Source: Oculina patagonica
Lineage: Eukaryota
DNA length: 64,000 bases
Direction: 5' to 3'
Assembly (NCBI RefSeq): GCF_052425735.1
Contig: NC_135759.1
Location: 15,624,001-15,688,000 of the forward strand
Part shown: positions 35,801 to 61,522 of the stretch, piece by piece
Position numbering within the stretch: the stretch's first letter is position 1
How the letters are laid out: every line of letters starts with the position of its first letter
The notes under the pieces: model-generated
Told to the model about the DNA's origin: nothing
The model's database searches: none
Seen by the model: the letters and a program-made list of their open reading frames with translations, nothing else
Translations under genes and position numbers: made by a program

Positions 35801-38289
35801 GAGTGAAACATACCGATTCATGGCTGACAAGAGTGAAATTTATATGTGGCTCAAATCATTATCTCCAAGCATGAAATTAGAAAGACTTTCGCTCCAGTTG
35901 GAAAACAGAGGGTTCCGCTCACGAAGGTCACTGGCTTTAATACATGAAATCTGAGGATTTGGACTCGTTCTTTCCGTCTCCTGATAAGCTGTTACTTGCG
36001 GAAAGACGCGTATTAATTAGAGGCCGAACTCAACAACATCCAAAAGAAAAGTCCTTGTAATGATGTCAACTCTTGTAAGCTAAAGGAAAAACACCCAGAA
36101 TTGATTATCGATATTCGCACCGTACAGCGTGAACTAAAGGAAGTTGAATAGTAGTATACGAAAGCAAAGAGCGCTTCCTGCCAACGAACTAAATCAAGGT
36201 TCTTTGCTATTTATGCGACCACGTCGATCTAAAGAAACAGAATCCAGCGAAATATTTAGATCGTTCTGCCTTGGATAGAGACTTGATGATTCTTCAGCGA
36301 CGGGTTCAGCGAGCGCTGCGAAATAAACTTCTATTAGAGGAAAATTATGACTGGAGATTGCCAAGTGTTATCGAAGAGTATAAACATGGAATTGTTGACC
36401 CTCTCCGAGTGCAGTGAGCGGAAAAAAGGAATGCATGCAAATGGTAAAGTTGTACTTTACTCATGTTATGCTGCACTAAACTGCGTTTGATATGTTCCCT
36501 GTTGTGTTTTTATTTTTGCGTGTTTTCATTTCGGCTTCAAATAATGTGCCGGTACACTGTAATTGGTTCAGACATTAGTTCATGCATTTCCCGTTGTGAT
36601 TGTGCTGTACAAAAATAAAGTTTGACTTTTAGACTACTAGAACGTGACAATAACTGTGTCTTATTGCGCTTGAAGGAAACTTACATTTGTATAGCAACAA
36701 GAGCGAGTTTATTTGTTCCCACGGATAAGATAAAAATAGCAACAGAATCAGACATATCCGTGTTTTCTGAAGTATGCTATTTGCTGGACTTATTTTGAAT
36801 CAGAACAATTTCTATTCTATTCAATGAAGTTTGTTCTATCTTGTCTAATCTGCGCCTGCATTTGAAGAAAATCTACGTTGTTTGGCCATGTTAGCGGTAA
36901 GAGTGAGTTTATTTGTTTTTATGTGTAAGATAAAAATCTGAGTTGTCAGTCACGTAGCCGCATTTTCTGAAGTAGGATGCGATTGAATTTGCTAGACTTA
37001 CTTTGGACACAGCTTCGCTAATCTAACAACAGCCGCTGTTGAATCTCACTTGTATACACGCTAGGTTTACATAATTTCTCTGATACCACATATTCGACAA
37101 CATCTATTGACATTTTATTTCGAACCGGTGTTTTTCGCAGCCCAGCCAGAGATGAGTTGCTGTCTTCGTAAGATTGAACAACTTTATTTACACATCCGAC
37201 GCTAACTCGCATATTTTTTGAAATTTGTCTTCGCGAAAACCCTTGATGATGTAGATCTGCCAAGCATTCTTTCCCGATAAACTTGAGGCAGAGCTTTACC
37301 ATTGTCGTAGCGGTAGATCCCTTCCTGTCGATGAACACCGAGTTTGCATTCACCTTTGCCAAACAGGAATAAAAAAGACTCCGACGGTGGCGATAAAATC
37401 TTGAAAGATAACTTGATTTTAGCGAAAAATATGTACTTTCCAGCGTAGCTAGTTTAGCAGGCGCGTAGGCCATTTCACATTCAAAATATTGCCGAGTCGC
37501 TGACATAAAAAAACTCACATTATATTTCCCCGCAACCGCTGTGATTGGACGGCGCTTAAAAAATGTTAATCCTTTTGTTTATAAGAAGAGCTCTCATTGG
37601 CTAACCGTCAAAAAAGGCCCAAAAAAATGTCCAAGTGTTCATGGTTCGAGTGTCCGCACTGTAAGTTGCAAGGATGATGGGATATAATTGAAGGGTATAT
37701 TGATCAGGGTGGTCGATAGGTCTTCTTTCTTTTGCAGAGGGGAAGGAATATAGCAAACTGTACACTTTCAACATTACTTTTTAGTCGTGTTAAGCCATAT
37801 GTAATCTTGTCGGGCTAAATCCCGTCCTCCATAATTGACTGAGCTCCACGTTTTCGTCACTGATGTTGCTAAGCAACAAGGTGGATGTTTTGCACCATGC
37901 TGGTGTGACAATTTTTGGAGTCCTCGCTGGAGCTCACTTCATTTTTATTTTTGCATTGGTTATAAGAATCAGAAACTCTCCAAGTGCTTCTGGAAGATTT
38001 GGTAAAAAGTGCATTTGTTCCCCCACAGAAATGTTTTTTGTCTCATTCTCTTTAACAGAACCGACTAGGAAAAACGAGCACTGTACCACAAGGCGGCCAA
38101 CAGACAAACACCAACAACAAACCGGCGATTCGGCCTATCAAAACCAAACCTTTGAATATGAAAAGTACGAGCACTCCAACCATTCAAGATGTGGCTCGTC
38201 GAACTCAACTGATACTTGTTGACTTCAGGTCAAATGTCCTGACTCTGGCCAGCGATTTACAGAAAATTGCCGCACAAACGTGCAATTAA
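32829..38289 (+). CDS. Gene C: secreted four-helix cytokine-like protein, 5 exons, about 227 aa
   Basis: Exons 32829-32841, 33344-33507, 33632-33718, 34398-34586, 38059-38289; phases 1/0/0/0. MKGKRSLTFSFLICAIFTVTVSS-QSWPCQSDKLVRRRLSDALSLSRILAGQISALRINM|SRRWPLSPFNATNIGFFGPRRRSNKTAIK|PQQILKANIRTLRTFILLIDNSTSQLRSF...IVAIITF|NRLGKTS...TIQDVARRTQLILVDFRSNVLTLASDLQKIAAQTCN. Intron 4 is expanded by two transposons. Confidence 0.85.
34780..35582. mobile_element. PIF/Harbinger-type MITE in intron 4 of gene C
   Basis: 24-bp TIR GGGCCGAATCGCACTAGCGGACAA with TTA TSD on both sides. Confidence 0.85.
35698..37661. mobile_element. Non-autonomous Tc1/IS630-like DNA transposon in intron 4 of gene C
   Basis: 27-bp TIR CAGTGCGGACACTCGAACC[G/A]TGAACAC with TA TSD. 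The minus-strand ORF 37018-37518 holds a paired-like HTH (LHHQGFSRRQISKNMRVSVGCVNKVV...SEIQQRLL) typical of Tc1-type transposase N-termini. No intact DDE domain was seen. Confidence 0.8.
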
Positions 38290-41200
38290 GAGAGATATTT
38301 TATTGTTAAAGCACAGTTAAGGAAATGCAAAATGATTGCTAAGTTAGCAACGATACGCAAGATGTAACTCGTATCGTCCACTGTACTTCCTATGGAAGAT
38401 GATATATCGTTATATTACACTAATATGGCACTGAATGATAAAGGTTAAAAAAATGTACACTTGCATGTAGCAATGTTAAACTTAATAAAGTTATCGATAA
38501 TCTCAACAAAAACGCGTGACAGTAATAATTGAGAAATTAATGTGTTTCTGACTGCGATATTTAGCAGGGGACGGATTCAGTGAAAAATGAACTTGGGAGT
38601 GACCACATCATTTAAGCGTGTACACGCTGAGTCAAATAACTTTCACTCTTCCCTAACTCCCCCTCCTCTCTAACTAACCCCCCCCCCCCCTCCTCTAGTT
38701 CATATCCCTTTGTGTTCATTTCATCGCATTATTGTAGGCTGATAATTTGCATACGAAAAATTGCCCACGGCACCTTGGAATAAATGTGAACAATTAGTGC
38801 ACAACTCATAAAGAAAACTGCTAAAATACAGATTAATTGAACCACACTTAGTAGAAACTCAGTCGTGTTCTATTGGAAATCCGCGAATCTGATTGGTTCT
38901 CCCACTGTTTTCTATTCACTGATATAACAAAATTGCGCGCTCGTTGCTCATTTAAGGACTAATTTTGCTTTATTTTTGGCTTAAAAGTACGTAACAAGGT
39001 AGGTTTTGGACTGCAGTCCTTTAAGAGTTTCTACTACTCGCCTTCGTTTTCAGTGCATTATCTTATTGTTTCCGACGGAAATTGTACGAAACGGTAAACT
39101 GTTTTAACATACTTTGAATTTGAAAATGAAAATAGGTGGTCTGAAAATCTAGTTATTTGTACTGATGACGCAAACTGAAAGGAACAAGTCGCTTAAAATT
39201 TCTCAAGTTCGTCGTTTAAAACCCCTGAGCTCAATCTTCGGCGCAAATCCTGTACTTATCCTTGTTTCTGTTTGATTTCCTATTACCCTGTCAATGTTTT
39301 TCTATCTAAGCAACGATAACTATTTAAAGGAGTCAAACTTCAGACCAAAGAAGTCCTTTGGTTTGAAGGTATAATGTTTCATTAAACTGCCCTTTTATAG
39401 TTCAGTTCGATGTTGCTGATTGATTGCTCATAAGTGGGGGCTGGAAGTGAAACCCCACAGATGGCTCTCGGACATCACTAGGGGCCGAGAACAGCGAGGC
39501 CACTGCATATTCAGCACCTGAATGCATGCAAATTTACGCTATACACACAGAAGTCAAACCTTGTTATATACGGACATGCGGTTTAAAGAACGTTGAGCAA
39601 TTTTCATTATCCTTCTTAAAAATGTATCCTGTCAGCATTTCATTTCCCCGGACTAAACGTGTTTAATATAATGGTTCACTAATACAACGAAAATACAGCC
39701 AGAAAAACATCATTGTATTCAATCGGACGAATTTAAATTTTATTCAGTGGCAAGTTTTAAAATTCACAACTCAAGACTCTATGAATGGTTTGATACTGGC
39801 TTTTTAAAATCCGTTGAAAAACAAGCAATTTTACATCAAACCTTATTAAAAAAGACGCTTCCATCGAAAAACTTCAAGTTTACTCCATCGATCTAGCCGA
39901 TGAGAATTCAAAGCCTTCAAGCGTCTCTTCTGGTGTTTTCCTTCGTTTTAAACTTTATAAAAAGCTTATGTCTAAACCATTCGTTATTTTTAACGTGGAT
40001 GTTCCTGGCTGCAATTTTAGTCATTCTCGTATCATCCTGGATACTTGGTTATTGCACAAGATTTAAAGGGGATGCACTAACATTTGAAAGGAAATCTCCC
40101 ACGCATATAAATACGATACTGTTTATGCATTATAAATATCAAAATTTTAAAGTGATGTAATATTGGATTTATAAGATAAGATTACAATTAATACTGTTTA
40201 ATGATACCGTATTTAAAATTGCGACAACGCCTGGCTCATGTAGGTGAATCAAGAGAAGTTTGGCCTGAATCAAACTTAGGCTTCATGGTTAGAAGACCTT
40301 TTCTTGGAATAACAGTAACTTATAATTTATTCAAATGATCAACTTGTTTACGTGTATTCATTGTTCAACAAATGAAGAACGAAACGAGAATAAATTAGCA
40401 CTCCACCGCTGTATTTATAATATTGCCCAATAAATATATATTGAAATTACAGTCCGATTAAAAACATGCTGCATATACAACCCCTTTAAATCTTAGCGCA
40501 TCCCCTCTAAATTTTACTTATTTATAAATTAACGTAACCGTTTTTTGGCAAAAGAACATTTAACCCGCGGATATATTACAAGCGTGTCATGAACTAAATT
40601 CAATATTGTACTGAAGACAAATTAAATCGAATTTATTGGTAAAATACGAGGATATTTATAGTATGCTGAAAACGTTTACGGGGTACAATAACAATCGATT
40701 AAACAGGTGCATCGATTATCATAACACGATCAGTAAGGAAATACGTCTTTTATCAGCCTGATAAGAAGTCGTATACAAGAAGATGTTATAACCCACACGC
40801 ATCAATCTCTCACATAAGTTTTCTGATAAAACTAAACTTTATTGTATTTTAGGTTTTAGAATTAAGAACTGTGCGAAATAGCTAGGACCAGGTGTTAAAA
40901 AGAACGACAGAAATCAATGTAGAATGCTACTTATCGAATGAAACACCTGCGTTTGTGAATCAGTTTAAGTGATATCCCGAATCAGAAAAGTGAGATAAGA
41001 TAATAATAATAAGATAAGATAAGAACCTTTCATGTTAAGGTGTCAACGTATTTAGTGTGTATTGTTAAATACAAGTTCTTATACGATTTGTTTCAAATGC
41101 TATATGCAATACCTAAAGCTATGATTCAAAGACTTGATGGAACAAACCAACTGCACTGGGCTTTAACTTCACAAGATATATTTATTCAATTGATTATGAA

Positions 41201-41613: not shown

Positions 41614-41892
41614 ATGAAAGGTGAGCGTTTTTCGACACCTAACAAGCCTTTTGATTTAATCGATAGACTGCGTTTGGTTCACTTTTGTCTGAGTACAAGG
41701 TAAAATAATTATCGTCGTTAAGCCACGTCCTAAACGAACAAGCTTCACAGTTTTTAGATTTGTAATTGTAATTTTATGTAGTAATTTTTTATGCTTTTAA
41801 ATTTTATGCTTTGTAAATTTTATGCTTTTTACTGGTCACCGATTGATACCAGTCAATCTCCTGAGACTGACCGGTCTACCAGGATAAATAAA

Positions 41893-41938
<46 letters not shown>

Positions 41939-44081
41939 GTGAGCAACTAACCATTTGCGAGAAGAAGTTCTTTACTGCGTTAATTACAAGTTTACAGAAG
42001 TTGCTCGGCTCGACATCTCTAAATCATCTACATCTACATCTACATTTATTAAGTTGATAAAATCTTATAAGACATCACATCAACTATTGTCCATATGCAT
42101 AAATTAGATAAAAATCATTCAGAACTATAGAATTTTTTTATGTTTTCTCTTTTAAATTTGAGCTAGTGCTAGCATAACAAGCTTTACAATTGGCTAAAAA
42201 ACTCATATGATATATTCCAGCCAATGACAGCAAAGATTTTTGAGCCAATCAGCTTCAAAATTGACTGTTTGATTTTACGAACATTTTCCCGCACACGTGA
42301 TCAGGAGTTGACTGCATAACTAACTGTTATTTTTCATTATTTTCTTTGTAGTTTTATTTTCTGTCTTTTGCACTTCGATGGCTATTTCCATGATACAAAC
42401 TCAGAAAGTATGTCAACTGGATAAGAACACTAGAGAACAATTGAGTAGATTGTTTCCGATGTTGCTAAAATTGGGAGTGGACCTGCTTAAGACAAAGGAA
42501 ACAATAATTGTAAGTATCTTCAATAAAAGTTGCATGTCTTAGCATTTTAATTTTTAAGAAAGGTCGATAACTTATTTATTATTGTAATATTAATTCAACT
42601 GTGTTTAATCCTGAGTTATATTAAGGTCATTCCACCGAAATAGAACTGAACATAGATTTTCAGCCAACTTTGCCTACTGGTTGATTACCTTTAGGGAACT
42701 TAAATTTTGAAATTAAAAAAGGGGGGTCATCATATTCGTTTAGAAGCAGGAAGACCTTGTATATACCGTATAATTCCTTAACAATTCCTTTGCGAGTCTG
42801 GCAAAGTACACGTTTCCGGTGATAATTTATTTTTCAAACATAGAAATTGATATTTATCATTCTATAGAAAGAATTTGATCACTGCACTCCAAATACGAGA
42901 AACAACTGATAGATCACCACACCCGCTTACGAGAAAACAACGATTTATCTCTCTCGCGAGCTAAAGAGTCAGATAGAAAAAAGCCGCCATTTTGTTTTCG
43001 TGCGCTCGCTAATTACGCGCAAAATTCTGCGCAGTAAGGATGCACAATACAGCATAGCCGCCTGTCTTTTACGTCCCCCACTCCCGTAGCAATTGCAAGT
43101 CGAAAATTTAATAATGTTTTATTACTTTCACTCCAGGGGAAAAGCTGGTTCAACTACAGCTACGAGACAGCAGACGTACAGTTGTCAGCGTTCCCAAATC
43201 AACAAAGTATAAATAAAACTACGGTAAGAACCTTCTTTGGTTTTCGTACTGACTCTAGACATTTCTGGAATTGACGAACAATTTGAGATTTTGTTTTGCA
43301 CGGAATTAACTCTAATATTCCAGACAATTAACATTTAATAGTAAGTGAGGAATCAGCTTTAAATTAACAGATACATGAAAGAAATAGGACTGTCAATTAT
43401 TGACCTTAAAGCGAATCAAATTTCGATATTTAACACAACACCATGCTTTTTTGAAGCAATACTGACTCAACGTTTCTTTTTTTTTTCAGGCTCAAAGCAC
43501 GTTGGACATGAACTGTCGAATTTTGAAAGCATTTCTCCCGATTATAAGCAAATTCAAAAGGCAATTTGGTGCCTTCACAGCTGCTAGGGATGTGACACAT
43601 CAGCTTCAAGAAATCAAATGGAAAGCTGGCACAACCATTAATTTAATTCAAACTATTCAAAATGCAGTACAAAAGGTAAATGAAATACATATAACTTTCA
43701 ATATTCCCCTGTTCCCCACTATCAATAGTGCAAAGTTCAAAAATTGTTTCCTCACTAGTATTGCTATTCTATTTCTTATACTATTTTTTAAACATAATTA
43801 CATAATGTAATGTAGGTTTTATTTCTTTATTACAGCCCGGCCAACCTCGTACAGCGGTCATCCGTCCCATCAAAAGCGCTGCCATTAACGCAACACGCAG
43901 CTTCCTTGGTGTGCGTACTAGTGCCCAGAGCTCCGCGACAACAAGACCCTCGGCGACAACTTTATCACTACATGACATTGCTCTGCAAGCGGCTACCATG
44001 TTGGACGATTTCTACTCCAACATTGTCAAAATGCAAGTGGATTTCTTAAAAGTTACCAAGACATTGTGCCCAACGAAATAA
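41614..44081 (+). CDS. Gene D: secreted four-helix cytokine-like protein, 5 exons, 227 aa
   Basis: Exons 41614-41620, 42352-42509, 43137-43223, 43490-43675, 43836-44081; GT-AG, phases 1/0/0/0. MKVLFSVFCTSMAISMIQTQKVCQLDKNTREQLSRLFPMLLKLGVDLLKTKETII|GKSWFNYSYETADVQLSAFPNQQSINKTT|AQSTLDMNCRILKAFLPIISKFKRQFGAF...QNAVQK|PGQPR...LHDIALQAATMLDDFYSNIVKMQVDFLKVTKTLCPTK. Confidence 0.85.
41895..41935. repeat. (TTA)n microsatellite
   Basis: About 13 perfect TTA units in intron 1 of gene D. Confidence 0.9.
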
Positions 44082-46080: not shown

Positions 46081-48590
46081 TTAATTGCAAGTTTGAGCTG
46101 CAATTTTCCGTAAATCGCTGGCCAGATGGAAAACATTTGTGTAAAAGTCAACCAATATGATTTGAGTTCGAAAAGCCACATCTTCAATGGTTGGAGAGGA
46201 CCCCATACTCGTTGAATTTAAAGGCTTGGTTTGGACAGACCGACTGGCAGGTTTGCTGTCAGTGTCGTTTTTCTTTTGACCGTCTTGTTGTTCAATGCTC
46301 CGTTTTCCTCGCCGACTCTGTGAATTGAATGACAAAAATATTTTATCAGATGAGTACTGACATTTTGAAAAACCGAGAAACAAAATAGGTTTCAGGTCCA
46401 ATTTGTTTAGCACATGCAATAGGCCTAAGTGAAGCTATCTACAATTTTGGAAGTCGGTTATCTTGTTTGCAATTTATAAGGAATTCTCTCCCAGCACATC
46501 GACTTTGGATGATTGCGCGACTTTATTGCATGCAAAAATAAGTAACTTCTGTGATCTTTATAAAAAACAGGTATGTGTTTTATTCTACCAATGTTACTGC
46601 AGGATTGCCTTAAATCATTCTCTTCACGTTAGAGCAGCTTTTAGTTGAGTGTCGTAAATCCAAAACCGAAGTAATTACTCTGACCAATCACAAGGGACAC
46701 TTACTATTCAGTAAACCAATCAAAACTCAAAGTAATTACATGTAGTCGTCACCAAGCGCGCGAAAACGTGCGCGAGTAAACTCACAATTGGTTTTGGTTT
46801 TACTTCTAATTGGGTGAGAAAGTGGCGTGATGTTTTAAAGCCAATCAATGAGCGTAGTAATGCAAAACCAAAGTAAAATCAAATTACTTTCGATACTCAA
46901 GGGGAAACTGCTCTTACACGAAGGCGCAATATCTACTAACCGATTTGATGATTGTCACAGTTCTTTTCAAATGGCTTATTACTGTCCTTGTCCGTCCTTT
47001 CTAGACCCACCAGTTGGGTAGTTACCAGTCCTTTAGCGACAGGAAAACGGCTCAGCTGATTGGTGGAATTATCCAGCAGTATGACGAAGGTTCTCAATAT
47101 ATGAATGTTTGCTTTGAGGATCTGTTCAGGCTGAGGTAAAGAAAGCGCATTTGATTACTTGAATGTCTAGACATCAGAATAAAGGCCTATCGGTCAGCCG
47201 ATTGAAAAATCATTCAACAATCTATCAGGATAAGAAAATCTAAGGGAACTTTTAGAAAGCCTAAACTCATTGCACTAGCTTCGCTTCGGCATGCAACTGA
47301 ATTAGGAACTGAGAATATCTTAAATCTTTTCAGTTTTATTGTTTTTTTTTTTAAACAATAGTTACAACTTTGAATAAACAGTTATTTATTTGTCAATATA
47401 ACAATAGTGATTTTAAACGAGCAAAGGAAAAGATATTTTATTACGTATTAATATTACAGGTAATTTATTTCAAGTACATAGCTCAACAATGACGTGCTAT
47501 CAGGTAAAATAAAAATGCATATGTGTAATCTTAAATCAGGTGGCAACTGATTTGTTGGCCATACTCAAAGAAATAAAAAGTATTTTTCTTTTGTACATCC
47601 AAACAAAATAATTCAAGTGATGGACAAGAGATATCACGTGATCGCATCGATATTAAGGGTTCGTGTGTTGCTATGCAACAGTATTTACCAAACTGAATCA
47701 AATCGCAGCAGCCAGTTTATTGCGAGGATGGACAGACCCAGAAAGAACAGGCCAGAGCAAAAAAAATTATGAAAATAGCCTTGGCCTTGGCCTCCTATGG
47801 GGCAATAGTTAAACAGCTCTTCCTACCTTGACGGTTTTGTTGAGTTTGGGACGAGGCCCAAAAAATCCAATATTGGTTGCATTGAAAGGACTTGGTGGCC
47901 ATCTTCTAGACTGGAACAATTAAAGAAAGCAATTCAAATAATGATTTTGGTGAATTGGAGTTAATGCCACTTTGCATTGTTCCTCGACTCGCCTTTTTGT
48001 GGTCTTAGCTGGTTTTTTTTCTGACGTTTATCTTTCTTTATTCTGTACAGAATAGAGGGAAAATGACATTTGTGTATGCAAACAACACAGGAATTGACAA
48101 CAGTTTAGAGTAAGTATCACTGAATTAGTACTTTCGCTAGAGAAACTAACCAAGCATTTTTTGGGAATGAAGTTTATTTTCAGACAAGAAACGAAGAAAA
48201 AATCAACCGGGAAACTCAGCCCACATTGGGTGGGAGGGAACGGAAGAAAATACTCGTGGAATCAACGACAGGCAATGAACGCCTCACAATACCAACGAGC
48301 ACGCCCCTCGTAACACGCTACACATTAATGTCCGAAGTAACTGAACATACGCTAGCTCTATTTTTTTAAGCTGGGCTAAAAATATAACGATGTAAGGGTT
48401 GGGGTTAAATTTACCATGTTGCCGCGGACAACGGAGATTTGTTCTGCCAGGACGCGAGAATTGATCAAAGAATCCGAGAGTAAGGCTTTAATATCTTTAT
48501 CCCTTTGACATGGCCAAGCAGCACTTTTGGCAGCAAAACAGTTCGTCATGGCGACGTTACACCAGGGAAGGAAACTAGTTGTCAAACTCC
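46081..48590 (-). pseudogene. Gene E: paralog closest to C and B, with a +1 frameshift in exon 4 (pseudogene or assembly error)
   Basis: Exons on the minus strand: 48590-48415 (..WPCQRDKDIKALLSDSLINSRVLAEQISVVRGNM), 47910-47827 (SRRWPPSPFNATNIGFFGPRPKLNKTVK), 47130-46941 (190 nt versus 189 in B and C; extra base near 47001), 46317-46081 (SRRGKRS...ILVDFYTNVFHLASDLRKIAAQTCN). Exon 1 is not securely located. Confidence 0.75.
46632..46913. mobile_element. MITE in intron 4 of gene E
   Basis: Imperfect TIRs GAGCAG...TTGAGTGTCGTAA / TTCGATACTCAA...CTGCTC with TTA on both flanks and internal CCAATCA repeats. Confidence 0.65.
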
Positions 48591-49381: not shown

Positions 49382-52300
49382 TTACAAACCACTTCTGATT
49401 TTGAAGAAATCGACCATCATTTGATAAGATACTTCGAGCAAGTCATTTAAGACACACTGTGAGATATGGAATGCCACTGTGTTTACGGACGAAGTATCGC
49501 GCATGGCTGTAAAGGAGTGTTGTTGCTGACCAGCTGTAGTGTCGAGGGCTGGAAGGCCTTTGAATTTTCGATCCTAAAATGAAAGGTTTGAAAAATAATT
49601 ATTTTAAAAGAATATTATTTACTGCAAAGAAAAGGAGCAGAAAAGGGATGGGGATCTTTTTATTAATTGGGAGATGAATAGCTCACTACAGAATGGTAAC
49701 GGCCATTAGGTTGACTAGGTTTCAGCTTTCGAGACCGATAACTTTACTTGCTAGCCCAACATTTCCTGGGTAGCTTTACACTAGTCATTCATGAACATTT
49801 ATGATCATGAAAGGCAAATGCTCGTGAAGAAACGAGTCTGTAATTTATACCATATTTTCAAACTTTCCAGCCAGTTTTAAGTGCATAGCCTAACTTGACC
49901 TCTGCACCTTCGCACTAACATGATTTTCGATTGCAATTGGTCCACAAAGTATTTCAAAGGAATGTCAAAATATGATGATAACGTTTAGTGGATGGTATCT
50001 ATTTGTAAAGCAGGTCATTTAATTTTATGTAATTAATGAATATTTTTAAGTTTATTTATAATAGTAACTTACAATTTTGACTGCCTTCGTGATCAAGTCT
50101 TTCAATGTACCCCGCATAAAAACTTGCAAAGACTTCAGATATGCAGGAAGTGTCGTGACATTCTGTGCGCGCGCCAACATTGCTAGTGATCCTGAAAGAT
50201 GTTGACTGTAGCCAAGAGAAACTCTTTTGTGAAACTCAAGGATTTTGCTTGTCTGAAAAGATAAAAATTGTGACAGAAAAACAAATTTACTTTGCTCCCA
50301 CTACAGTGTATGTTTAAAAGGAGGAGTTGTCAAGGCCATAACCAGACCTTTAGCGTAGACGAGGCAAGATTTTGCTAGGATGTTCTGGGGGCATGCCCTT
50401 CAAAACGTTTTGAGAACTACAAACTCTGAAACTCTTTCTTTAACATTTTTTATAAGGTATTTCTTGAAAAAATCAATCTTGTTCAACTGGGGATTATTTC
50501 CCAACCAAACGTATTTTGTTTTTAATTTTAGGTCAAAATCCTCTTGCGAGTTACGGCCCTGGTTGTCCATCAAAAGAGGTTCGTTAGGATTATGGTGTTG
50601 AAATTTTAAAAAATAATACGACTTTTTTTTAATTTTCACAAACATGTTTCGACGGTACATCCGTCATCGTCAGTGTGACGGTTATGAAAGTTTACAGTGA
50701 TTTAAAACGTGCCTGTTACAAATCATACGTTACATTGCGTTGAAAAGCAATACGCTAGATAAATTTCGAAGTTAACGGAATTAAACAGAAGCGCGCGCGC
50801 GTGCAGCTATAGGGAAAGCGTCAAATTGATGTGTTTGACCTGTTGATTAAGGTCCGGCTTTTCCCACTTGATGTACATAGACTCCTTAAGCTTAACCTGG
50901 TACTTAGTAGGCGCAGAGTCTAAGATCTTGAAGCAGTCAAAGTGACAAGAGGTATGGCATGACTCTGAAGCCTGCAAATGCTTATAAACGTGAGAGGTTA
51001 TGTCCGATGACAAGTGCTTGTGCTCGCGCGTGGAGAAATGTCGGCTTGTTTCGCCAACGTAACAAGCATTACAGCTTGCTCAAGAAAATTTGTACACGAT
51101 GCTAACTTCGAAATTTATCTAGCGTATTGCTTTTCAACGCAATGTAACGTATGATTTGTAACAGGCACGTTTTAAATCACTGTAAACTTTCATAACCGTC
51201 ACACTGACGATGACGGATGTACCGTCGAAACATGTTTGTGAAAATTAAAAAAGTCAAATTATTTTTGAAAATTTCTACATTTTTGCTGCTGTCTCGACCA
51301 TTTGGATTATGGTATTCTAAAACGTTTAGCCAAATTTATCGAGTTTGTGTGGACGGTTTTGTCATCCATATTTATCTTTCTTCAAACGTAACTATTATTA
51401 TTCCTTTATGGCTTATTATTACACTAGTTTTGGTGTTTTACTACTCAGTAAAAATTATTTGGAAATTTGCTTCAATTGTCAGTAAGTCATTAATTATTTT
51501 ATCATAACGCTTGAAGCCTTACTTTGAGAGTGTAAATATTTAGAGCTATTTGGTATATTTTTTTCAACGTAGAATACGTTAGGATAGTGGTGTCCGTCAT
51601 ATTAGACTCCTCAAATAAGGGAGATGAGATAAAGAGTAGTAAACAATTGCAAAGCAGGATAACTGCATCAGCAGTAGTCTTACCGATGCATTGGTGCAAC
51701 TGGATGAAGGTAAATTCATGTCCGCCATCACCGCAAGAGCCAAGTTGTTACAGGTAGGGTTACATGAATCCGTGGTGTTAAACTTGGAATTCTGAAACAG
51801 AAAAGGCGAAAAAAGACAATTTTGAGCTTTGAAAGAACATGGGACTTTTAGGGTAGACTCAACAATAAGAAAAATCTGAGCACGCAGACATCAATATATC
51901 TCTGTTTTATCGAACGGCCAAAAGCCACCAGTTTTGGGCTATAACTAACCTAAGCTTGAATGAGTTAGCATTATTATGGAAATTTAAATCTCTAGAGTCT
52001 ATTAACATGTTTTATCATCAACCTTTCTACCACGTTTTCCGGAAACGTTTACTTTTTCTCTGATGTTTCTTCTCGAATTTGTTTTTTAAAATTTGTGGTC
52101 AAATCTAAGTAGCAAATATCATGACAAATAAATAAGATGCCCATTTATTATTTTGCAACAAAATTGCTCACAAATATCTCAGGGTTGTGTTATTTGATAA
52201 GGAGATTAAATTGTATTAGGGAAGGGGACTTCTTACTTTCCAAACATGGATTGATGTTATCTCATTCAAAGCCGACTTCTAATTGGCGCTTAATATTAAG

Positions 52301-53363
52301 TTATTTTAATGGATGTGCACGTAGTACTTTCCACATAAAGTCTCGGTTTGGGAAAAGCTTCGAGCTCAATCTATTGACACTAGCTCTTTATAAATAACCA
52401 ACAAGTCCTATCCAACTTACCATGTACTTTAACGCCCTATATGTCAAGCCAGTCAGGAGACGGGACGAAGGAACTAGAAAATCGATAGTTCTTCGCCAAT
52501 CCCGACGGAGCCGGTGTCTATCTGAGCATCGAGCCCCGCGAGGACAGCCGGCGTTTACATGAGTATTGTGAAACACAACCAAGAGAAATAACACAGAATA
52601 AAAAGTGAAGAATTTTGTTGGGAAACCTGCGAAAAGATTATTACAAAAATTAAACTCGAGTACAAAACTGTGCGTGAGTTTCTATTGCTAACCATCTTTG
52701 GACCAATCAAAAGAGTTTAGATTTAGACTCATCATAACATTCATTATAGCCTTGATGTATTTACAACAAGTATTTCTGCAGCGGGTAGGAAATGTAAATA
52801 TGACTTCTGAAACAATCTTCGTCTTTTTTGTAGAATTCTTTTGTCAACGAAAAACCGAATAATATTTAAACTATACTAAGCTTTGAATTTCATCATATTG
52901 AAATTAAATCAGATTCTTAAAAGTCACATTTGGTCATTGAAAAAATGTGATAAGAAATAGAAATTGTTTGCGGGGGTTTTTTTTTTTGGGGGGGTGTGGT
53001 TTTTGGGGGGTTACCAAAGAATTCAGTTGAATTTATCGTTCATAGTAAAAATTATTTCGTACAAATTCCTTTAAGGCATTCGAGTAAGTTGATGAAATAT
53101 ACTTCAAACACGCTGAACAAAATGCAAGCAATCACATTGAAAGAATTAACCAGGTAAATGGGAGAAATTTAGCTTGCTCAAACACCAAATAACTGAAGTT
53201 GGCGTTTAATAAAATTTGTCTGTTGATTTAAGAAAAGCTGCAACTTCACTTACCATTGTTATTAACTTTAGTGAGGTTTCTAGTAACAGGTTAGCCAGGT
53301 AGTCAGGTTAAATCAAATGAGTGTACAGTATAAGTCATCATACTCGAAGCACTTACCAGCCAT
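49382..53363 (-). CDS. Gene F: secreted prolactin/GH-like four-helix protein, 5 exons, 230 aa
   Basis: Exons on the minus strand: 53363-53357, 52626-52421, 51791-51684, 50252-50073, 49573-49382 (7/206/108/180/192 nt); GT-AG, phases 1/0/0/0. MAGFPTKFFTFYSVLFLLVVFHNTHVNA-GCPRGARCSDRHRLRRDWRRTIDFLVPSSRLLTGLTYRALKYM|NSKFNTTDSCNPTCNNLALAVMADMNLPSSSCTNAS|TSKILEFHKRVSLGYSQHLSGSLAMLARAQ...KAVKI|DRKFKGLPAL...VAFHISQCVLNDLLEVSYQMMVDFFKIRSGL. Confidence 0.87.
50636..50678 (-). ncRNA. Minimal type-I hammerhead ribozyme (Penelope pLTR)
   Basis: UCACA-CUGACGA-U-GACGG-AUGUA-CCGUC-GAAA-CAUGUU-UGUGA: CUGANGA and GAAA core, 5-bp stems I and II, and a very short palindromic stem III. Confidence 0.75.
51199..51241 (+). 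ncRNA. Minimal type-I hammerhead ribozyme (second, inverted copy)
   Basis: Identical motif TCACACTGACGATGACGGATGTACCGTCGAAACATGTTTGTGA on the plus strand. Confidence 0.75.
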
Positions 53364-53462
53364 AGTGTGGAACTGTTATACTTCTTTCCTCAAGTTTTAA
53401 ATTCCGGTGTTGCCTACTTTGAGGCTGTAGGTTTGAGTGGTGAATCACCGAAGTATCCATCC

Positions 53463-53469
53463 TTATATA
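53463..53469 (-). promoter_or_regulatory. TATA box of gene F
   Basis: TATATAA on the minus strand 106 nt before ATG 53363. The context GCAGGAACCTTTAGATA.GTATATAA is shared with gene G. Confidence 0.65.
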
Positions 53470-54957
53470 CCTATCTAAAGGTTCCTGCTTTGTCAGCTGA
53501 GGGCCAAATTTAGGATTTTCTTCCACAACTCTGCAAGACGCGAAATACTAAGTCGGTCGTACTAAGAAATTTGACCGTCCGGTCGAATTCAATTATCTTC
53601 TTTAATCCCAAAAGCAGGTGGAGAACTGTAGCCATGTCCCTAAACATAACTTTCCAATTTAAATATTTTTTGTCAAATACCAAGAGAGTTTAGTCTCTTT
53701 CTGCAACCAAACAGGCAACAGAAGGCAATTTTGAGATACCGCCTAATGGCCAAATGGACAACAAATTTTCATTTTTTTTTTTAATAATACCCATGTCATT
53801 TTTTCACTTCAATCGATTTGTCTTGACGCAACACATTGTTATAGATTTGTATGCAGCTAAGCCTGGATTTAAGAAAATATCTCCCACTGTTATATCGAAG
53901 CTACGTCCGCTGTTGCAATTTCACCCGGGTTCCTCTGATTACCAACATTTCAGAAGTAGATCTGATGATTCTTGCTGGCATGCCCTGTGAATTGCATGAA
54001 ATAACTACAAACAGTGTAACATGCCAGTACCATAATTTTGTTTACGCAAAAATATGACAGAAAAATGTGATTTGCGTTCGAAACATTGAGGAGGAAAATA
54101 AGGCATGCGCAGACCCGATAACTTCGCTTCAGAAGAACTCTTCCGGTCAAATTATTTCGTTGTCATAGCTAAACTTACATCCATGATAACTTTGAAGGTA
54201 GGTAGTAAAGTGCGATTTTTACTAATTTTAAATGTTCATTTTTAACATCCCGTACTTTTAACCTTCCTCTAAATATTGCATATTAAAAAAAGAACCGAAT
54301 TCCTCCCTTTTAAACCAATTTTGTGCTAGCTAGATGAAGAACATGGTCACACATCTATCACGTAATTACATGTACATCACATGTTTTGTTTCCTCGATGT
54401 CAATCAAAACAAAAAATATTTGGCAAGCCGTTAGTGCAACACTTAAATATCCCTCGTTCGATTATCACAACTTGTATTTTTTTGTTTGTAGAAAATTTCC
54501 GTCTCTTTAACAGGCCATGTTACGCAGTATCTCACGCATGTTCTAGGTTGTTATCACCGACCATGACCTCAACTTGTTTTCACCAAGGAGCATGCACTTG
54601 AAGTGATTTTCAAAGGTATAAATTGTAAGGCTTGGTTGTTAAAAGAGGTTAACGCAAATGCAAGAATAAGCTATCCACTGAAGATAGAAATGAAACTTGA
54701 TCCTTTGAACCTGATGGTTGATGAAAGTTACATCATGTCGATACGCTGATGCACTTGAATAGGTCGAGTTCAGTAAGTTTCAAGTTTTGGCTACTCGGCG
54801 ACAGTACCTAAATCCTTAAACGAAAATATAAAACTGAATTTATTCAATAATTTTAAGTAGAGTACTTCGTCTTCATCCGATTTAACTTTGGTAGACTGAA
54901 GAGTTAAAAGAATCATGTGGTATGGGCGACCAAAGAAGCACCTTGATTACTCCCTTA

Positions 54958-55094
54958 AGCCTGGTTCTCATATGATCGTCCCGATCGTCTCTGTCGCTTC
55001 TGTCGCTTCAAAAAGTTGCTGCTCCAATCACCTCAGACTTTGCAAACGACAGAAGCGACAGAGACGATCGGGGCGATCATATGAGAACCGGCCT
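54958..55094. mobile_element. Hairpin-like PIF/Harbinger-type MITE
   Basis: TIR of about 48 bp (GGTTCTCATATGATCG.CCCGATCGTCTCTGTCGCTTCTGTCG) with TTA TSD. Confidence 0.8.
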
Positions 55095-56329
55095 TTAGAT
55101 AAACAGAAGACTGCGAGGAAACTGTTGTATAAGTTGAAATAAAACCAACCATCGTCATTGTTAAAAGCTATAAGTTAGACTTATTAAAGATCAGTAAAGA
55201 CCGGCAGTAACACAGTTACAGAATGAACTCTTTTGAACCGTCAGCGAAAATTGAAACAAAATACTTTGATCAGTTATAGGGTGATAACTTTGTCATATTT
55301 TCCCAATATGTTGATAAATTTTCATATCTGGAGGTCTTATCTGACCCATAACGTCATAACATAAGGCAAGTTAAAGTAAAAGATGTTGAGACCATGTTAT
55401 GTCGTAATTCAATGGCAATAAACAAACTTAAAATTGCTTATTATCAGGACAAAAATGAAGTCGACAAGGTGTAGCACTAAACTCGTTCCCAGGTTCTCTC
55501 TTGTTCCCGTCCCTGGAACTGGAGACCCTTTAATACTCAACTGTAGTTGCATTCTTAGTTCTCTATGTACTACAATTTAACTATTATTCAAAGTTTTTAT
55601 ACATGTGGTGCATTATTGAGCTGTAATATATTGGTGTCGGATCTACACGATTGAGTTGTCTACAAAATGAATTGTGCTAGCTGGTCTGTTCTGAAATTCT
55701 GGTTACATTGCATGCACAGGCTAATTATTTGATCAACTGCACTCATAACAAAACTCTTATTAAGTCCTGTGAGCAACTGCTGGGTGAACTACAAAAGCAA
55801 ATGGCTTGAATGGCGGTAATTTCATTTTACTACAAAGCAGCTTAGAATACGCGCCAATGAGAGGAGAGCAAATGTGTAAGCGCATGACACGGGTTTTACG
55901 CGCGACAAAAGCACAATTCCAAAGCTATTGTCAACTTAATTAAACTTTTTCACCTAACAGCGCAAAACTTGTGAAATACGTCCGTGTGTCACGGTTATTT
56001 GTTGAAGAAATGATGTATTATTCAATCACGTTTGCCTTTAGTACACTGGCAAAGTAATTTTTAGCAAAACTGGACCACTATTCGTAGTTTCCATTATTGC
56101 ATGTCTTAAGACTTTCGAGTTTTTGAAGTGAAGCTGGTGATAGTGTCCCTTTAATATAATCACGAATGAAATTTTCCAAATTGCTCATTGACTTGGACAC
56201 TTAACTGGACAAATGCGTTAGGCATGCTTGTATAGGGGGCTGGCAATATAATATAAGATAATAATTAAAGTAAAATGCATAAAAAGTCAGAGTTAATCCA
56301 AGATACTAGCTAGATTTTTACAGGCCGGG

Positions 56330-57515
56330 CTAGCGCTAGCAGCGTTATATTCAGTGTTTTCCATAAAATAAACAATTTCATGCAGATTTTTCACTGCCAC
56401 AAAAATTACGACAAAACATGGCCGTTGTATTTTTTATCAGATCAGACCACCACGGGGATAAAGACTCCAATCGACACACTGTTGCACACGTTAAAACTGA
56501 TAAAAGTACTTTGATTTAATTGTTCCTGATGATTCAGGAGTAAACTTCAACATTTTTTTCTGCACATTATAGTACCAGGACTGAGTTTTTACTGCGATTT
56601 TCCGACACGAACGCCTCAATCTGGTTTTATCTTTATCGACTCCAATCGGAACCCTGCTTATCCTAAATGGCGTAGTTGTCACTAAGGTGGTCCATTTCAT
56701 GGTTCGATTTGGAGACAAACGAAGTATTAAACTTCTTATCACTTCAATTTGAACGTTTCACTGTACCAGCGAACGTGTTCAGACATTTACTAGTTCGATC
56801 TCCCTGATAAACCAAAGCATGAAAATTCAGCCGATCGCGACCTCATTCAAAGTTTTTGTTTAGCTCATATGCGATCAAATTTTGTTTCCATCTCCAGGGT
56901 AGACAGTTTCTTCTTATATTTACCCTCCCTATGTTCCTAGCATGACAAATTTGATCTCTGAAAATTAAATTCAAGTACATGCAGTGTATATAAACAACAA
57001 GAAGAAGAAGGGGCTGTGCGGCCATAACATCCTTAGACCTTTTGGCTTATAACTGAATAATGAATGGGCGTTGGATGAGATATCGATAACACGGCCCGTG
57101 AAAGTGACCGAGACTTTCCATAAATGAGAAATACAAGCGTAAAAAATTGATTAGAGTATGCTGGAAGACTTCAATGTCGTACTAACGGTTTGTCTAACAT
57201 TAGTTGTTTTGCTTCGACTCTCTCAGACTCTCGTCGAGTGAGGAAGCAAGCAAAACATGCGATTATATTAACATTGCACATGTAGCTACATGTATGATAC
57301 TGATTTGTGTTTATGTCCTTCACCTAGCTAAATTGAAGTTAGATTGAATTTAAATATAAAAAGTCTTGCAAATAGAAGAAATGTTAACGAGTACAGGATG
57401 TTGGAATTGTTTTAAAACTAGTAGAGTCCTCGCACTTTACTACCTACCTTCAAAGCTATCATGGATGAAAATTTAGCTATGACAAGGAACAAAAATTTGA
57501 CCGGAAGATTTCTCC
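56330..57515 (+). repeat. Upstream region of gene G, duplicated at 62805-64000
   Basis: Colinear high-identity match over about 1.2 kb, for example CCATAAAATAAACAATT.CATGCAG, AACCCTGCTTATCCTAAA, AAATGAGAAATACAAGCGTAAAAA and CGCACTTTACTACCTACCTTCAAAG. Confidence 0.9.
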
Positions 57516-58169
57516 ATATGAACGAGTAAAAGCCATTGTGCTGCGTCGTTTTGCCTTCAATGTCCCAACGAAAATATCACATTTTGTCTCATGTTTGTGC
57601 TCACAAATTAACGCTAATGGCGCGTAACGCTGCTACTCATTTCATTCAACACAGGCAGAGCAGCAAGAGTTATCAGATCTATTGTTGAGCTGATGGTAAT
57701 TGGAAGAACCCCGCCTGAAATTCCAGCAGCAGATGTATGATAAAACAGTGGGAGATATGTTATTAAATTCATGTTTAGCTACATCAAAAATTAATAACAA
57801 TTTTTAAACCCGGATAAGTTAACATTGACAGGATTAATGTTTCAAAATATAAAAGAATGCCAAAACGTAAACTAACAAGTCATTGTCAATAAGGTTTCTA
57901 AAATTTGCTTGTATATTGACTGGGATCTATTAAAATCAATTAAATTTCAGGTATATTTGTCAAAAATTATCAAAATTAGGATGAAATGGTTAAGGGATTC
58001 CATATTTTTTTGCCACCTGTTGAAATGACTGAAGAAAACTTAAATTAGACTGTACAGCGGATGAAAAAATTCCGCAACCTTGCATTGCATCTTGTAGAGT
58101 CGGGAAAGTAACCGAACTAAAAATCTTAAATTAGACCCTGAGCTGACGAAGCAGGAACCTTTAGATACG

Positions 58170-58177
58170 TATATAAA
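58170..58177 (+). promoter_or_regulatory. TATA box of gene G
   Basis: TATATAAA 104 nt before ATG 58274. Confidence 0.65.
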
Positions 58178-58273
58178 GATGGAAACTTCTAAGATTCACC
58201 ATTCAAATCTACAACCTCAAAGTGAACAACACGAGAATTTACAAGTTGAGAAAAGAAGTGGAACAATCACAAT

Positions 58274-61200
58274 ATGTCAAGTAAGTGAGATTCAAGTGGT
58301 GTTATCAATGACTGTATTATCTTTTGTTTTCATTGTTTGATTAGATACCGGCTGACATGTTAATCTATAGGCAGTGTTTGTAATAATAACTATGTATTTA
58401 CTTTTCTTTAACCAATAGTCAAATATTGTTCAACTCCAACTTTAGTTATTTTGTCTAACACCAAGTTTTTTCTCAGTAAACTGATAACTTGTTTGCTGCT
58501 GAACGGTTTTCACATTTTTCTGCATGTTTTGTTCGGTCGTTCAAGTGCGATTTTATACCGACCTTCAGTGCGCCTTTTTATGAAATTTGTATGGAATTAT
58601 TATAACTCTAGACGATAAACTCAATAAAAAAGTTTAAAACTTTGGCAGAGTTTTAAAATTCCGCGCGTTAAATGACCAAGGGACCTAAAGGCTCTGGATA
58701 AAATGTTAATAAGTATAGTGTACTCAGAGATTCAGTTTATTTTGTTTATTTAAATACATTGTTTTAATTTTCACTGAAGAAACATTCTTAATTTATGGCC
58801 AGTTCTAATTGGTGACAAAACAGTTCCGAAAATTTAACAATACTCCCAGCTTCGTTTCACTTTGTTAATTTGGCACGGTGGAAGTCATAGCAAGATGCTC
58901 ATACGTCTTATTAAAAAATTCAAAGTAACACACAAAAAAATCAGAATAGTGCATTTGTGTCAAGTGACGTCATAATTAAGACTACATTGAGGTTAGAATA
59001 CATATGATTACTGCAAGGGTGGATCAAGGATTGCACCAAAGGGAGAGGGGCGAAGTGAAATGGGCCTGACGTTTGCTGAAAAGAAATGGCAGGCGGGCGA
59101 GAGAGAGTGAACGTAGGCCTTTACTAGCCAAACAATGTGTGGCAAAAATGTCTGGATCATTTCGGCCTTATTATTTTAGTAAAAAGAGAATGGGGAGGGG
59201 GAATAGGCTCGCCCCCCCTGTTCCCTTGATCCGCCACTGCAATGAACTAAAGACCGCAAAGACTTGATGTACTGATCCCCTCCCTTCCTGTCTTAGGGTA
59301 GAAAAGATAGGAGAACCATGCACGCACAGTTTAAAAATTTAGCTGTCAACAAGATCTAAACCTTATTTTAACAGTCCTGCATACTTAATTTTTAATGCTA
59401 TTTTAATTTCGCAGGTCCTCGAACAAAATGTTTCCCAATCTTTTATGTTATATTTCTTCTCTTGGCTATGTTTCACGACACTCCTGTGCAAGCCGGCTGT
59501 CCTCGTGGAGCTCGATGCTCGGGAAGGGCCGGGCTCCGTCGGGATTTGCGAAAAACTATCGTCGCACTGTTTGATTCGTCACGTCTTCTGGCTGGCTTGA
59601 CATCTAGAGCTTTAAACTACACGGCGAGTAACGTACATGAACAAACAGCATTACTTTCAAATATTAAAGTTAACCTGAAAATAATAGTTTTTCTAACATA
59701 GGAAAACACCAAACAATTAACAAAATACCGAAAATAAACAAGGATGGTTTGAACTGAGAAAGTTTAAAACGCATTTCGAACGAAAAACTTCGAAAAAACT
59801 TGATCATTTTTTTCCAAAATGAGCATTCCTTCATCAAGCCTGGTTGTAAAAGTTAGACAAATTAAAGCTACTCGAATTTTTTTTATCCCAGCTTTTACAT
59901 TTTTTGGATTCAACTTTCTTATTTGGCAAACAAAACTATGATGATTTCCATCAGGCATCTGACGTTGTTAAAAATCGAAACAAAAAAGATTCTGAGTAGT
60001 TGTGTTAGTAATTGATTGTAAAATAATATTTATTCATAAAATTTGTTATCGATAACTTTGATTTCTATCAAACACTGATAGATCTTTTTGCCGGTACGGC
60101 GGCCATTTTGATTTATATTGTTTGGAAGACATTATGGGATGCTAAGGGAGCAAGTTTTCTATTATTTGCCCCTTGGTCATCCCATAATAGCTATTTAACT
60201 CCTGCAATATATAGACGAACTCAAATTTTTTGACCCATAGCAATGAGTGTTCAGTCAAAGAATAAAGACGGCAACAAGATTCAACAGAATCGAAGTTACA
60301 CAATCATATTGTATACTGTAATCAATAATTGATTATGTCGGCACGAAAACTGAAGCAAATGATTGATACTGTTATGTTTTTGTATTTCAGAATTTTCAGT
60401 TCAACGTCACTGATTCATGTAACCCAACCTGTAACTCGTTGATTTCTGCGGTGATGGCGGACATGAACTTAACTTCATCCAGTTGGACCAATACATCGGT
60501 AAGACTTGGACTCTACATTCAGATTTCAGATTTTTATTATTTGCTTTTTTTACTCATCCTCTTACACAGCTTTACATTTTTTTAAAGTGCTCCGGTTCTT
60601 TTTGTTCGTTTTTTTTTTTCTGTTTTTTCATTTCAACTTTCTTTATATTTGACAAAGCTAACTATACTCACGTTCTAGAATACACCAACCTCCTGCATTT
60701 AAACATTTACACAAAAAATAACTATGGTTTCGTTTCTAATATTTTTCAGAGAAGCAACCTACTGGAATTTTACAGAAGAGCTACTCTCGGCTACAGCCAA
60801 GAGCTTACACAATCAATGGCCGAACTGTCGCGTGTACAGAAGGTGGCAACATCTCCTGCATATTTGAAGTCTTTGGAAGACTTTATGAAGAACACATTAA
60901 AAGGCTTGGTCTTAAAGGCAGTAAATAGGGTATGTCAATTTTTTTTTAAATCAATTTGCAATTTGCGTGTGAGACAGACAGATGCCACTTGCCTTTTTAT
61001 TTATAATTAAACGGTGCTGTTATATTAATTTCCGGGGGAAGGGGGAAAGTTAAAGATGGGTGAGGTTGCTCGTCGTCTTGGGGTGTAAATAACGGATTTT
61101 GATCTCACTTATATTAGGTAGCCTGCGTTGCAGACGAACAAAACCCCGGTATAGTCCGTCTATACCGGGGTTTCGTTCGTCTGCAACGCAGGCTAATATT

Positions 61201-61522
61201 AGGTTGTTCAGGCCAGACTAGCACTTAGTCGGATATAGTTTAGTTCTAAAATACACAAATGGAGGTTACCTTACTTAGCTATTTACAAATTTATATTATT
61301 TTCCTCCTTCTTCTTCCATTTCAGGATCGAAAACTCAATGGACTCCCGGCGCTCATCACTACTGCTGGTCAGCAGCATTCCTTTACACCGGTTCGGCCCC
61401 AGTCCCTCGATGCAGTGGCATGCCATATTTCACAGTGTGTTTTAAGCGACTTGTACGCAGTAGCCAATCAAATGCTCATAGATTTCTTCAAAATTAAAAG
61501 AAGTCTGCAAATGCAGAAATGA
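58274..61522 (+). CDS. Gene G: secreted prolactin/GH-like four-helix protein, 5 exons, 233 aa
   Basis: Exons 58274-58280, 59415-59623 (GC donor ACG|GCGAGT), 60391-60498, 60750-60929, 61325-61522 (7/209/108/180/198 nt). MSSPRTKCFPIFYVIFLLLAMFHDTPVQA-GCPRGARCSGRAGLRRDLRKTIVALFDSSRLLAGLTSRALNYT|NFQFNVTDSCNPTCNSLISAVMADMNLTSSSWTNTS|RSNLLEFYRRATLGYSQELTQSMAELSRVQ...KAVNR|DRKLNGLPAL...VACHISQCVLSDLYAVANQMLIDFFKIKRSLQMQK. Confidence 0.87.
61119..61195. mobile_element. 77-bp fold-back hAT-type micro-MITE in intron 4 of gene G
   Basis: TAGCCTGCGTTGCAGACGAAC...GTTCGTCTGCAACGCAGGCTA, almost wholly palindromic, with an exact 8-bp TSD ATATTAGG at 61111-61118 and 61196-61203. Confidence 0.85.

Follow-up and report, generated by a model that had tools for sequence, protein, structure and literature searches.

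A head-to-head gene pair from a hexacoral tandem family as candidate long-chain helical-cytokine-type ligands in the stony coral Oculina patagonica

Introduction

The growth hormone (GH)-like protein of amphioxus and the GH and PRL-L proteins of lamprey (PMC9546618, PMC9010856) are close known systems with which the genes F and G of the stony coral Oculina patagonica can be compared. Both genes lie in a stretch of 64,000 nucleotides (NCBI RefSeq assembly GCF_052425735.1, contig NC_135759.1, positions 15,624,001 to 15,688,000), here called the window, to which all coordinates refer unless another sequence is named. The amphioxus GH-like protein is devoid of the conserved cysteines of GH and prolactin (PRL), and the two GH/PRL disulfides absent from it probably arose in ancestral vertebrates (PMC9546618). 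On the receptor side, CRLF3 is a group-1 class-I cytokine receptor without a known endogenous ligand (PMC6797617, PMC8063046, PMC12026705); it is present in cnidarians, again with no identified ligand (PMC6797617). The literature searched treats class-I helical cytokines as a bilaterian or vertebrate invention, and neither a description of a cnidarian four-helix cytokine nor any mention of genes of the F/G family was found in it. For these two reasons, the orphan state of CRLF3 and the lack of a described cnidarian four-helix cytokine, the family to which F and G belong is worth testing.

An earlier note, made from the letters of the window, had described F and G as specifically PRL/GH-like and as a possible pre-bilaterian relative of that hormone family. 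Our analysis favours a broader reading. We propose, with a probability of roughly 55%, that F and G are secreted, disulfide-stapled and glycosylated long-chain ligands of the helical-cytokine/hormone type, which belong to a hexacoral tandem gene family and resemble prolactin in their details by convergence.

Results

F and G are intact five-exon genes arranged head to head. Gene F occupies 49382..53363 on the minus strand; its model is based on motif search, tblastn with the exons of G, splice-site contexts, an assembled uninterrupted open reading frame and the ratio of nonsynonymous to synonymous substitution rates (dN/dS). Its coding exons lie at 53363-53357 (7 nt), 52626-52421 (206 nt), 51791-51684 (108 nt), 50252-50073 (180 nt) and 49573-49382 (192 nt including the stop codon) and encode a product of 230 aa. 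Gene G occupies 58274..61522 on the plus strand and was modelled by motif search and an assembled uninterrupted open reading frame. It consists of the coding exons 58274-58280 (7 nt), 59415-59623 (209 nt), 60391-60498 (108 nt), 60750-60929 (180 nt) and 61325-61522 (198 nt including the stop codon) and encodes 233 aa. The spliced models thus reproduce the exon sizes given in the earlier note, 7/206/108/180/192 for F and 7/209/108/180/198 for G. The intron phases are 1-0-0-0 in both genes, and the identity between them is about 60-75% per exon (tblastn with the exons of G), which identifies F and G as paralogues. All introns of F and G are bounded by AG/GT sites with the sole exception of intron 2 of G. 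Its donor is GC (gcgagt) where the homologous donor of F is GTAAGT; an in-frame GT donor located 9 nt downstream, after 59632, is an alternative.

The 7-nt exon 1 was assigned to F and G because of their homology to the annotated orthologue from Desmophyllum pertusum, P0006 (OS493_011864), which begins with ATGACAG directly followed by the donor gtaagt and has a similar sequence upstream of the start. Exon 1 of G was located by its likeness to this context, and the same exon-1 donor is used in the database model P0016. Parts of the database models P0016 and P0001 are built wrongly: one is without exon 2, and the other extends beyond the stop codon. The tail that follows the F-like part of the RefSeq model P0001 matches 48415-48588 and 47826-47888 on the minus strand and 26784-27029 and 33346-33507 on the plus strand. 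This tail is probably a repeated coding-like element that was joined wrongly to the F-like gene.

The Desmophyllum orthologue has exons of 7/206/108/177/201 nt, and all five exons are in frame in F, G and Desmophyllum alike. The pairwise dN/dS among the three genes is 0.42-0.47 at a synonymous divergence (dS) of about 0.54, with 0.46-0.47 for F against G and against Desmophyllum. These values indicate purifying selection on a fast-evolving protein. The cysteines and the helix-D motif are conserved in the alignment of the three genes. The sequence data support the view that F and G are real genes under selection and that their products are probably secreted.

Reads of four sequencing runs (X1-X4), presumed to be RNA, were mapped to the locus; they contained no exon-exon joints and covered introns and intergenic DNA at low depth. 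The runs behave like DNA and therefore give no evidence of transcription. When the search for runs was restricted to RNA-Seq, none was listed as containing F. In contigs of three runs, 59614 and 61504 are connected backwards to about 57446-57448 (57446-57515), which points to a repeat or to a structure that differs among individuals or paralogous copies. Intron 4 of G contains at 61110-61200 a perfect-looking inverted repeat, gcctgcgttgcagacgaac...gttcgtctgcaacgcaggc, with a word depth of 240-430x in the four runs against about 5x in its surroundings. The repeat is probably a mobile element of high copy number or a miniature inverted-repeat transposable element.

All motifs that had been quoted for F and G, including DLRKTIVALFDSS, GYSQELTQSMAELS and GLPAL, were located by six-frame search. 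GCPRGARC is encoded at 59495-59518 (plus strand) and 52526-52549 (minus strand), and HISQCVL at 61424-61444 (plus strand) and 49448-49468 (minus strand). The mature N-terminus GCPRGARC, the exon-3 cysteines and the helix-D cysteine motif are all present in the sequences of F and G, as had been reported. The signal peptide of G, which starts in exon 1, continues at 59415..59494 (plus strand) judging by the hydrophobic N-terminus and the -3/-1 rule; cleavage is predicted after VQA, before GCPRGARC. The mature chain would then be 202-204 aa long, within the range of about 160-210 aa that characterizes long-chain class-I cytokines. Each protein contains six cysteines, at mature positions 2, 8, 53, 57, 172 and 177 in G and 2, 8, 53, 57, 75 and 179 in F. 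The predicted products carry three to five N-glycosylation sequons each.

The distribution of the predicted helices over the exons is regular. According to the gene models and the AlphaFold2 (AF2) model of P0006, helix A, the A-B loop, helices B and C, and the C-D loop with helix D are each encoded by one exon. The phase-1 intron lies seven bases into the signal peptide; of the phase-0 introns, one follows helix A, one precedes helix B and one follows helix C. The long A-B loop is encoded by exon 3 of G (60391..60498, plus strand), which includes the cysteine pair of CNPTC, sequons for N-glycosylation and a tryptophan conserved in the family. Exon 4 (60750..60929, plus strand), which aligns with the equivalent exon of other subfamilies, encodes the predicted helices B and C with their short connecting loop, as modelled for the orthologue P0006. 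Exon 5 (61325..61522, plus strand) encodes the long C-D loop and helix D with Cys172 and Cys177 and includes the family motif L-x-D-[LF]-[YL]-x5-M-x-V-D-F-x-K.

AF2 with an 11-row alignment of F/G-type sequences only gave a mean predicted local distance difference test score (pLDDT) of 38.7, which is unusable. A 28-row family alignment including distant paralogues raised the pLDDT to 61, with a predicted template modelling score (pTM) of 0.45; exon-2 fragments were excluded from the alignment because MAFFT repeatedly misplaced their second half. In the resulting model of P0006, DSSP assigns helices to residues 30-47, 77-112, 120-146 and 172-207. Helices B, C and D are predicted confidently (pLDDT 75-81), while helix A and the A-B loop stay below 50, helix A is unpacked, and a short helix in the exon 3 region is of low confidence. 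As in long-chain cytokines, the A-B and C-D loops are long, with about 34 and 27 residues, and the loop between B and C is short.

Fold searches with this model returned only generic bundles. Foldseek against PDB, the Swiss-Prot models and the AFDB clusters found nothing better than E 0.2, and neither VIA-align nor the Atlas shape search gave a significant match; PRL was not among the top 50 of VIA-align. GH/PRL entries were the sole recognisable cytokine family in the non-significant Foldseek lists, at ranks 14, 16 and 27 in Swiss-Prot, 3 (growth hormone) and 12 (prolactin 2) in the AFDB clusters and 43 in PDB, with E 0.35-3.7 and template modelling (TM) scores of 0.13-0.33 for a query model with pLDDT 61. 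We take their recurrence to reflect similar helix and loop lengths in the model rather than kinship. Family profiles run against the sequences of solved structures in PDB gave no cytokine match. Matches of the profiles to coronavirus spike and GCN4 coiled coils (E 0.006-1) were rejected as helical noise.

The feature neighbours of the mature part of P0006 in the ESM-Atlas are almost all four-helix cytokines, with cosines of 0.89-0.93 and 194-211 of 256 features shared; in the calibration of the tool such counts are typical of same-family matches, and 0.9 is attained by 4-10% of shuffled proteins. The neighbours belong to the families LIF/OSM, cardiotrophin-1/CNTF, IL-12α, IL-6/G-CSF, somatotropin-like (21 of the 100 matches) and IL-11. 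The same neighbour families were obtained with the Pocillopora paralogue P0010, which is about 21% identical to P0006, is devoid of the N-terminal and A-B-loop cysteines of F and G and has none in helix D. The agreement between the two lists strengthens the reading at the superfamily level and means that F and G are not distinguished by their somatotropin signal. The genes of GH, PRL, EPO, IL-6 and G-CSF all consist of five exons with intron phases 1-0-0-0, and their exons correspond to the helices in the same manner. The five-exon structure with these phases, which is expected of the somatotropin family and found in F and G, is therefore not specific to GH/PRL. The predicted loop lengths (long A-B, long C-D, short B-C) are those that crossover connections require.

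The family is narrowly distributed. Only 15 relatives emerged when 1.84 billion proteins were searched exhaustively by HMMER with a profile of exon 5, all of them from corals, anemones or unlabelled environmental contigs. Further annotated paralogues, OS493_011865, OS493_011867, OS493_011870, ACROYT_G005621 and ACROYT_G005622, were obtained in a word-indexed profile search; a word-index search with one anemone repeat gave no match. Members with a named source come from Oculina, Desmophyllum, Pocillopora meandrina, P. damicornis and the sea anemone Actinostola, and matches of the F/G subfamily came from Oculina, Desmophyllum and unlabelled contigs only. In hhalign, the F/G type was aligned with the other subfamilies at E 6.5e-5 with a probability of 64% over 114 co-linear columns, which correspond to exons 4 and 5 and helices B-D. 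F and G are therefore a single subfamily within a gene family of hexacorals that is older than the pair.

The specific likeness to prolactin was assessed separately. No match to Pfam Hormone_1 (PF00103) at E<=10 was obtained by hmmscan with the exons of F and G, P0006, P0016, P0001 or the paralogues, and so the profile of the somatotropin family gave the proposed relationship no support. The PROSITE somatotropin signatures 1 and 2, applied as regular expressions, match neither F nor G nor the Desmophyllum orthologue; all that is present is the core C-[LIVMFY]-x2-D-[LIVMFYSTA], which makes up the first six positions of signature 2. The absence of the C-terminal GH/PRL disulfide loop, already pointed out in the earlier note, was confirmed: there is no cysteine beyond residue 177 in G, 179 in F and 181 in Desmophyllum. 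The ungapped, exon-anchored alignments to pieces of PRL that had been put forward are weakly better than composition shuffles (p 0.002-0.05). For helix A the values are 0.02 (G), 0.01 (F) and 0.05 (Desmophyllum), and in G three other registers outscore the anchored one; for exon 4 they are 0.002 (G), 0.03 (F) and 0.02 (Desmophyllum), and the anchored register is the best one in G.

Human PRL has coding exons of 28/176/108/180/192 nt, a set that sums correctly to the 227-aa precursor. Measured against the numbers for PRL, the coincidences are divided between the coral genes. The 192-nt exon 5 is found in F only, and Desmophyllum has 108/177/201 nt in the corresponding exons; paralogue A of the same cluster has 93, 186 and 243 nt. 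The helix-D cysteine is residue 38 of exon 5, the position given for PRL in the earlier note, in G only; in F it is residue 40, in Desmophyllum residue 44. The candidate cysteines for a disulfide between the A-B loop and helix D are 53/57 and 172/177, with the A-B loop at pLDDT below 50 in the AF2 model. In the other subfamilies and in the anemone, an N-terminal/C-terminal cysteine pair is found instead, and for this reason the PRL-like cysteines of F and G are, in terms of the sequences compared, most simply regarded as a derivation specific to corals. Of the specific claim of the earlier note, there remain a secreted protein with the helix, loop and exon layout of long-chain cytokines and somatotropins among its neighbours. 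A particular affinity to GH/PRL was borne out neither by HMM search, signatures and Foldseek nor by the paralogues.

At least seven members of the family, A to G, are located in the window, of which F and G are the two richest in cysteine. Paralogue A (19484..22882, plus strand) corresponds to P0054 (ACROYT_G005621), with which its assembled product is identical at 235 of 235 positions; its exons measure 7/179/93/186/243 nt with phases 1-0-0-0, and its intron 2 contains two runs of N (20366-20493 and 20527-20665). Paralogue B is represented by an exon-4-like piece at 27882..28052 (plus strand; tblastn with P0050 and P0052, E ~1e-8), and paralogue C by its last exon at 38071..38290 (plus strand). 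Paralogue D, of the P0051/P0050 type, spans 41614..44081 (plus strand), with a 7-nt exon 1 at 41614, an exon 4 of 186 nt and a last exon at 43836-44081; its middle exons were placed only approximately. Paralogue E (46084..47133, minus strand) comprises an exon-4-like piece at 47133-47023 and a last exon at 46347-46084. The last exons of C and E are closely similar and lie on opposite strands, and F and G likewise form an inverted pair. The first coding exon is 7 nt long and followed by a phase-1 intron in every member checked, namely A, D, F, G and the two Desmophyllum genes examined. The cysteines of F and G are missing from the other subfamilies and the anemone units, which have one cysteine close to the start of the mature chain and another close to its C-terminus; the former aligns with the second cysteine of the N-terminal loop of F and G.

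In Desmophyllum pertusum MU827782.1 (L001 2099-4570 and 10001-14045), the D-type gene P0050 (OS493_011865) is located directly upstream of the F/G-type gene P0006. The order, D-type followed by F/G-type, is the same as in Oculina. The first coding exon of P0050 is also 7 nt long (ATGAAAG followed by gtaagc), and an EF-hand gene lies downstream of P0006. Upstream of the cluster in the window, two intronless genes encoding only FERM domains (FERM_N, FERM_M, FERM_C) form an inverted pair at 10962-12230 (minus strand) and 14286-15362 (plus strand). In the annotation of P0011, a protein of the anemone Actinostola, a FERM domain is followed in the same chain by three units of the helical family, fused to it in tandem. 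The arrangement of a FERM gene beside the helical family thus seems to be conserved between corals and anemones.

Discussion

We propose that F and G arose as a duplicated head-to-head pair and represent one subfamily in a tandem cluster of at least seven Oculina patagonica genes, in a family that is so far confined to hexacorals (Oculina, Desmophyllum, Pocillopora and Actinostola). Each gene would encode a signal peptide followed by about 170-205 residues with four long amphipathic helices, connected by a predicted long A-B loop, short B-C loop and long C-D loop and presumably packed in an up-up-down-down topology. With several N-glycosylation sequons and putative disulfide staples, the products may act as extracellular ligands that bind and bring together cell-surface receptors carrying fibronectin-III cytokine-binding modules, and they may be homologous to the cytokines of vertebrates. 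The N-terminal cysteine loop and the loop-to-helix-D cysteines of F and G would be derived within the coral subfamily and convergent with PRL. Three observations weigh against this proposal: the anemone unit has no cytokine neighbours in the language-model search, the ESM-Atlas model of P0006 has generic bundles as its only structural neighbours, and the neighbour lists, gene architecture and loop lengths can all be explained by a common architecture without descent.

One alternative is that the genes form a lineage-specific family of secreted helical proteins without cytokine ancestry, for instance matrix, mucus, venom or recognition proteins, whose likeness to cytokines is due to chance or convergence. 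The absence of any significant sequence or structure match to a cytokine, the generic bundles among the structural neighbours, the narrow taxonomic range and the fast evolution all agree with such an origin, and phase-1 introns after the start of a signal peptide are common in secreted proteins. We nevertheless regard it as rather unlikely. P0006 and P0010, divergent as they are, independently give neighbour lists made up almost entirely of four-helix cytokines with high counts of shared features; the five-exon 1-0-0-0 mapping of exons to helices fits long-chain cytokines at every boundary; and a simple up-down bundle has no need of long A-B and C-D loops. Another alternative, that F and G are specific GH/PRL relatives which kept the N-terminal loop, the loop-to-helix-D disulfide and the exon sizes of a pre-bilaterian ancestor, appears very unlikely. 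It draws on the 108/180/192 exon sizes of F, which equal those of PRL, on mature cysteines at 2, 8, 53/57 and 172/177 close to the 4, 11, 58 and 174 of PRL, and on the core of signature 2. Somatotropin-like proteins are moreover the largest named set of language-model neighbours (21/100), GH/PRL recur in the Foldseek lists as no other cytokine family does, and the anchored exon-4 alignment is the best register in G. Set against this are the lack of a Hormone_1 match at E<=10, the failure of the full signatures, the missing C-terminal loop and Foldseek values no better than E 0.35 and TM 0.33. The exact numbers vary even among F, G and the Desmophyllum orthologue, and paralogues with another cysteine pattern lead to the same neighbours. 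The N-/C-terminal cysteine pair of the other subfamilies and the anemone marks the F/G pattern, found only in Oculina, Desmophyllum and unlabelled contigs, as derived, and the GH/PRL disulfides are reported to be missing in the amphioxus GH-like protein (PMC9546618).

That F and G are non-functional or mis-modelled, being pseudogenes or exons of other transcripts, is the least credible of the alternatives and has almost no weight in our assessment. It could appeal to the absence of splice joints from four runs and of a listed RNA-Seq run for F, to the weak GC donor in intron 2 of G and to the models P0016 and P0001, which skip exon 2 or run into downstream exons. Three genes with five in-frame exons and canonical sites, with dN/dS 0.42-0.47 at dS ~0.54 and with conserved cysteines and helix-D motif, are difficult to reconcile with it.

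A further step would be to regard the hexacoral family as true pre-bilaterian class-I helical cytokines and as the endogenous ligands of a cnidarian receptor such as the orphan CRLF3, which is grouped with the receptors of EPO, TPO, PRL and GH. We consider this step speculative and unlikely at present. If it were true, hormone signalling of the GH/PRL/EPO type would be older than the split between cnidarians and bilaterians. Independently of this, a clustered family under selection, with predicted secretion and a cytokine-type gene architecture, offers concrete candidates for studies of expression, structure and receptor de-orphanisation in corals and anemones. The locus also gives reason for caution, as the exact agreement of exon sizes and cysteine positions with human prolactin no longer holds when orthologue and paralogues are brought into the comparison.

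Among the known systems, vertebrate PRL/GH (PF00103) share with F and G predicted secretion, a mature chain of about 200 aa, five exons with phases 1-0-0-0 and a common assignment of helices to exons. Like PRL, F and G have a small N-terminal cysteine loop, and further cysteines, near the PRL positions, lie in the A-B loop and where helix D begins. The N-terminal loop is C-x5-C in F and G compared with the C-x6-C of PRL, and the A-B loop contains two cysteines in G and three in F instead of one. Unlike PRL/GH, F and G have no HMM or signature match and no C-terminal disulfide loop, the exon sizes and cysteine offsets vary inside the coral subfamily, and the sister subfamilies are devoid of the F/G cysteines. 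The ligands of the gp130 type (IL-6, LIF, CNTF and IL-11) differ in their disulfide patterns and gave no HMM or Foldseek match, but they show the highest language-model similarity (cosine 0.93-0.87) together with a similar size and loop pattern. EPO and TPO, which differ from the coral proteins in giving no sequence match and from F and G in their C-terminal cysteine, resemble F and G in having five exons with phases 1-0-0-0 and a 180-nt exon 4. The A- and D-type paralogues and the anemone proteins, with one cysteine near each end of the chain, come close to the EPO/TPO type of staple, which in EPO is Cys7-Cys161.

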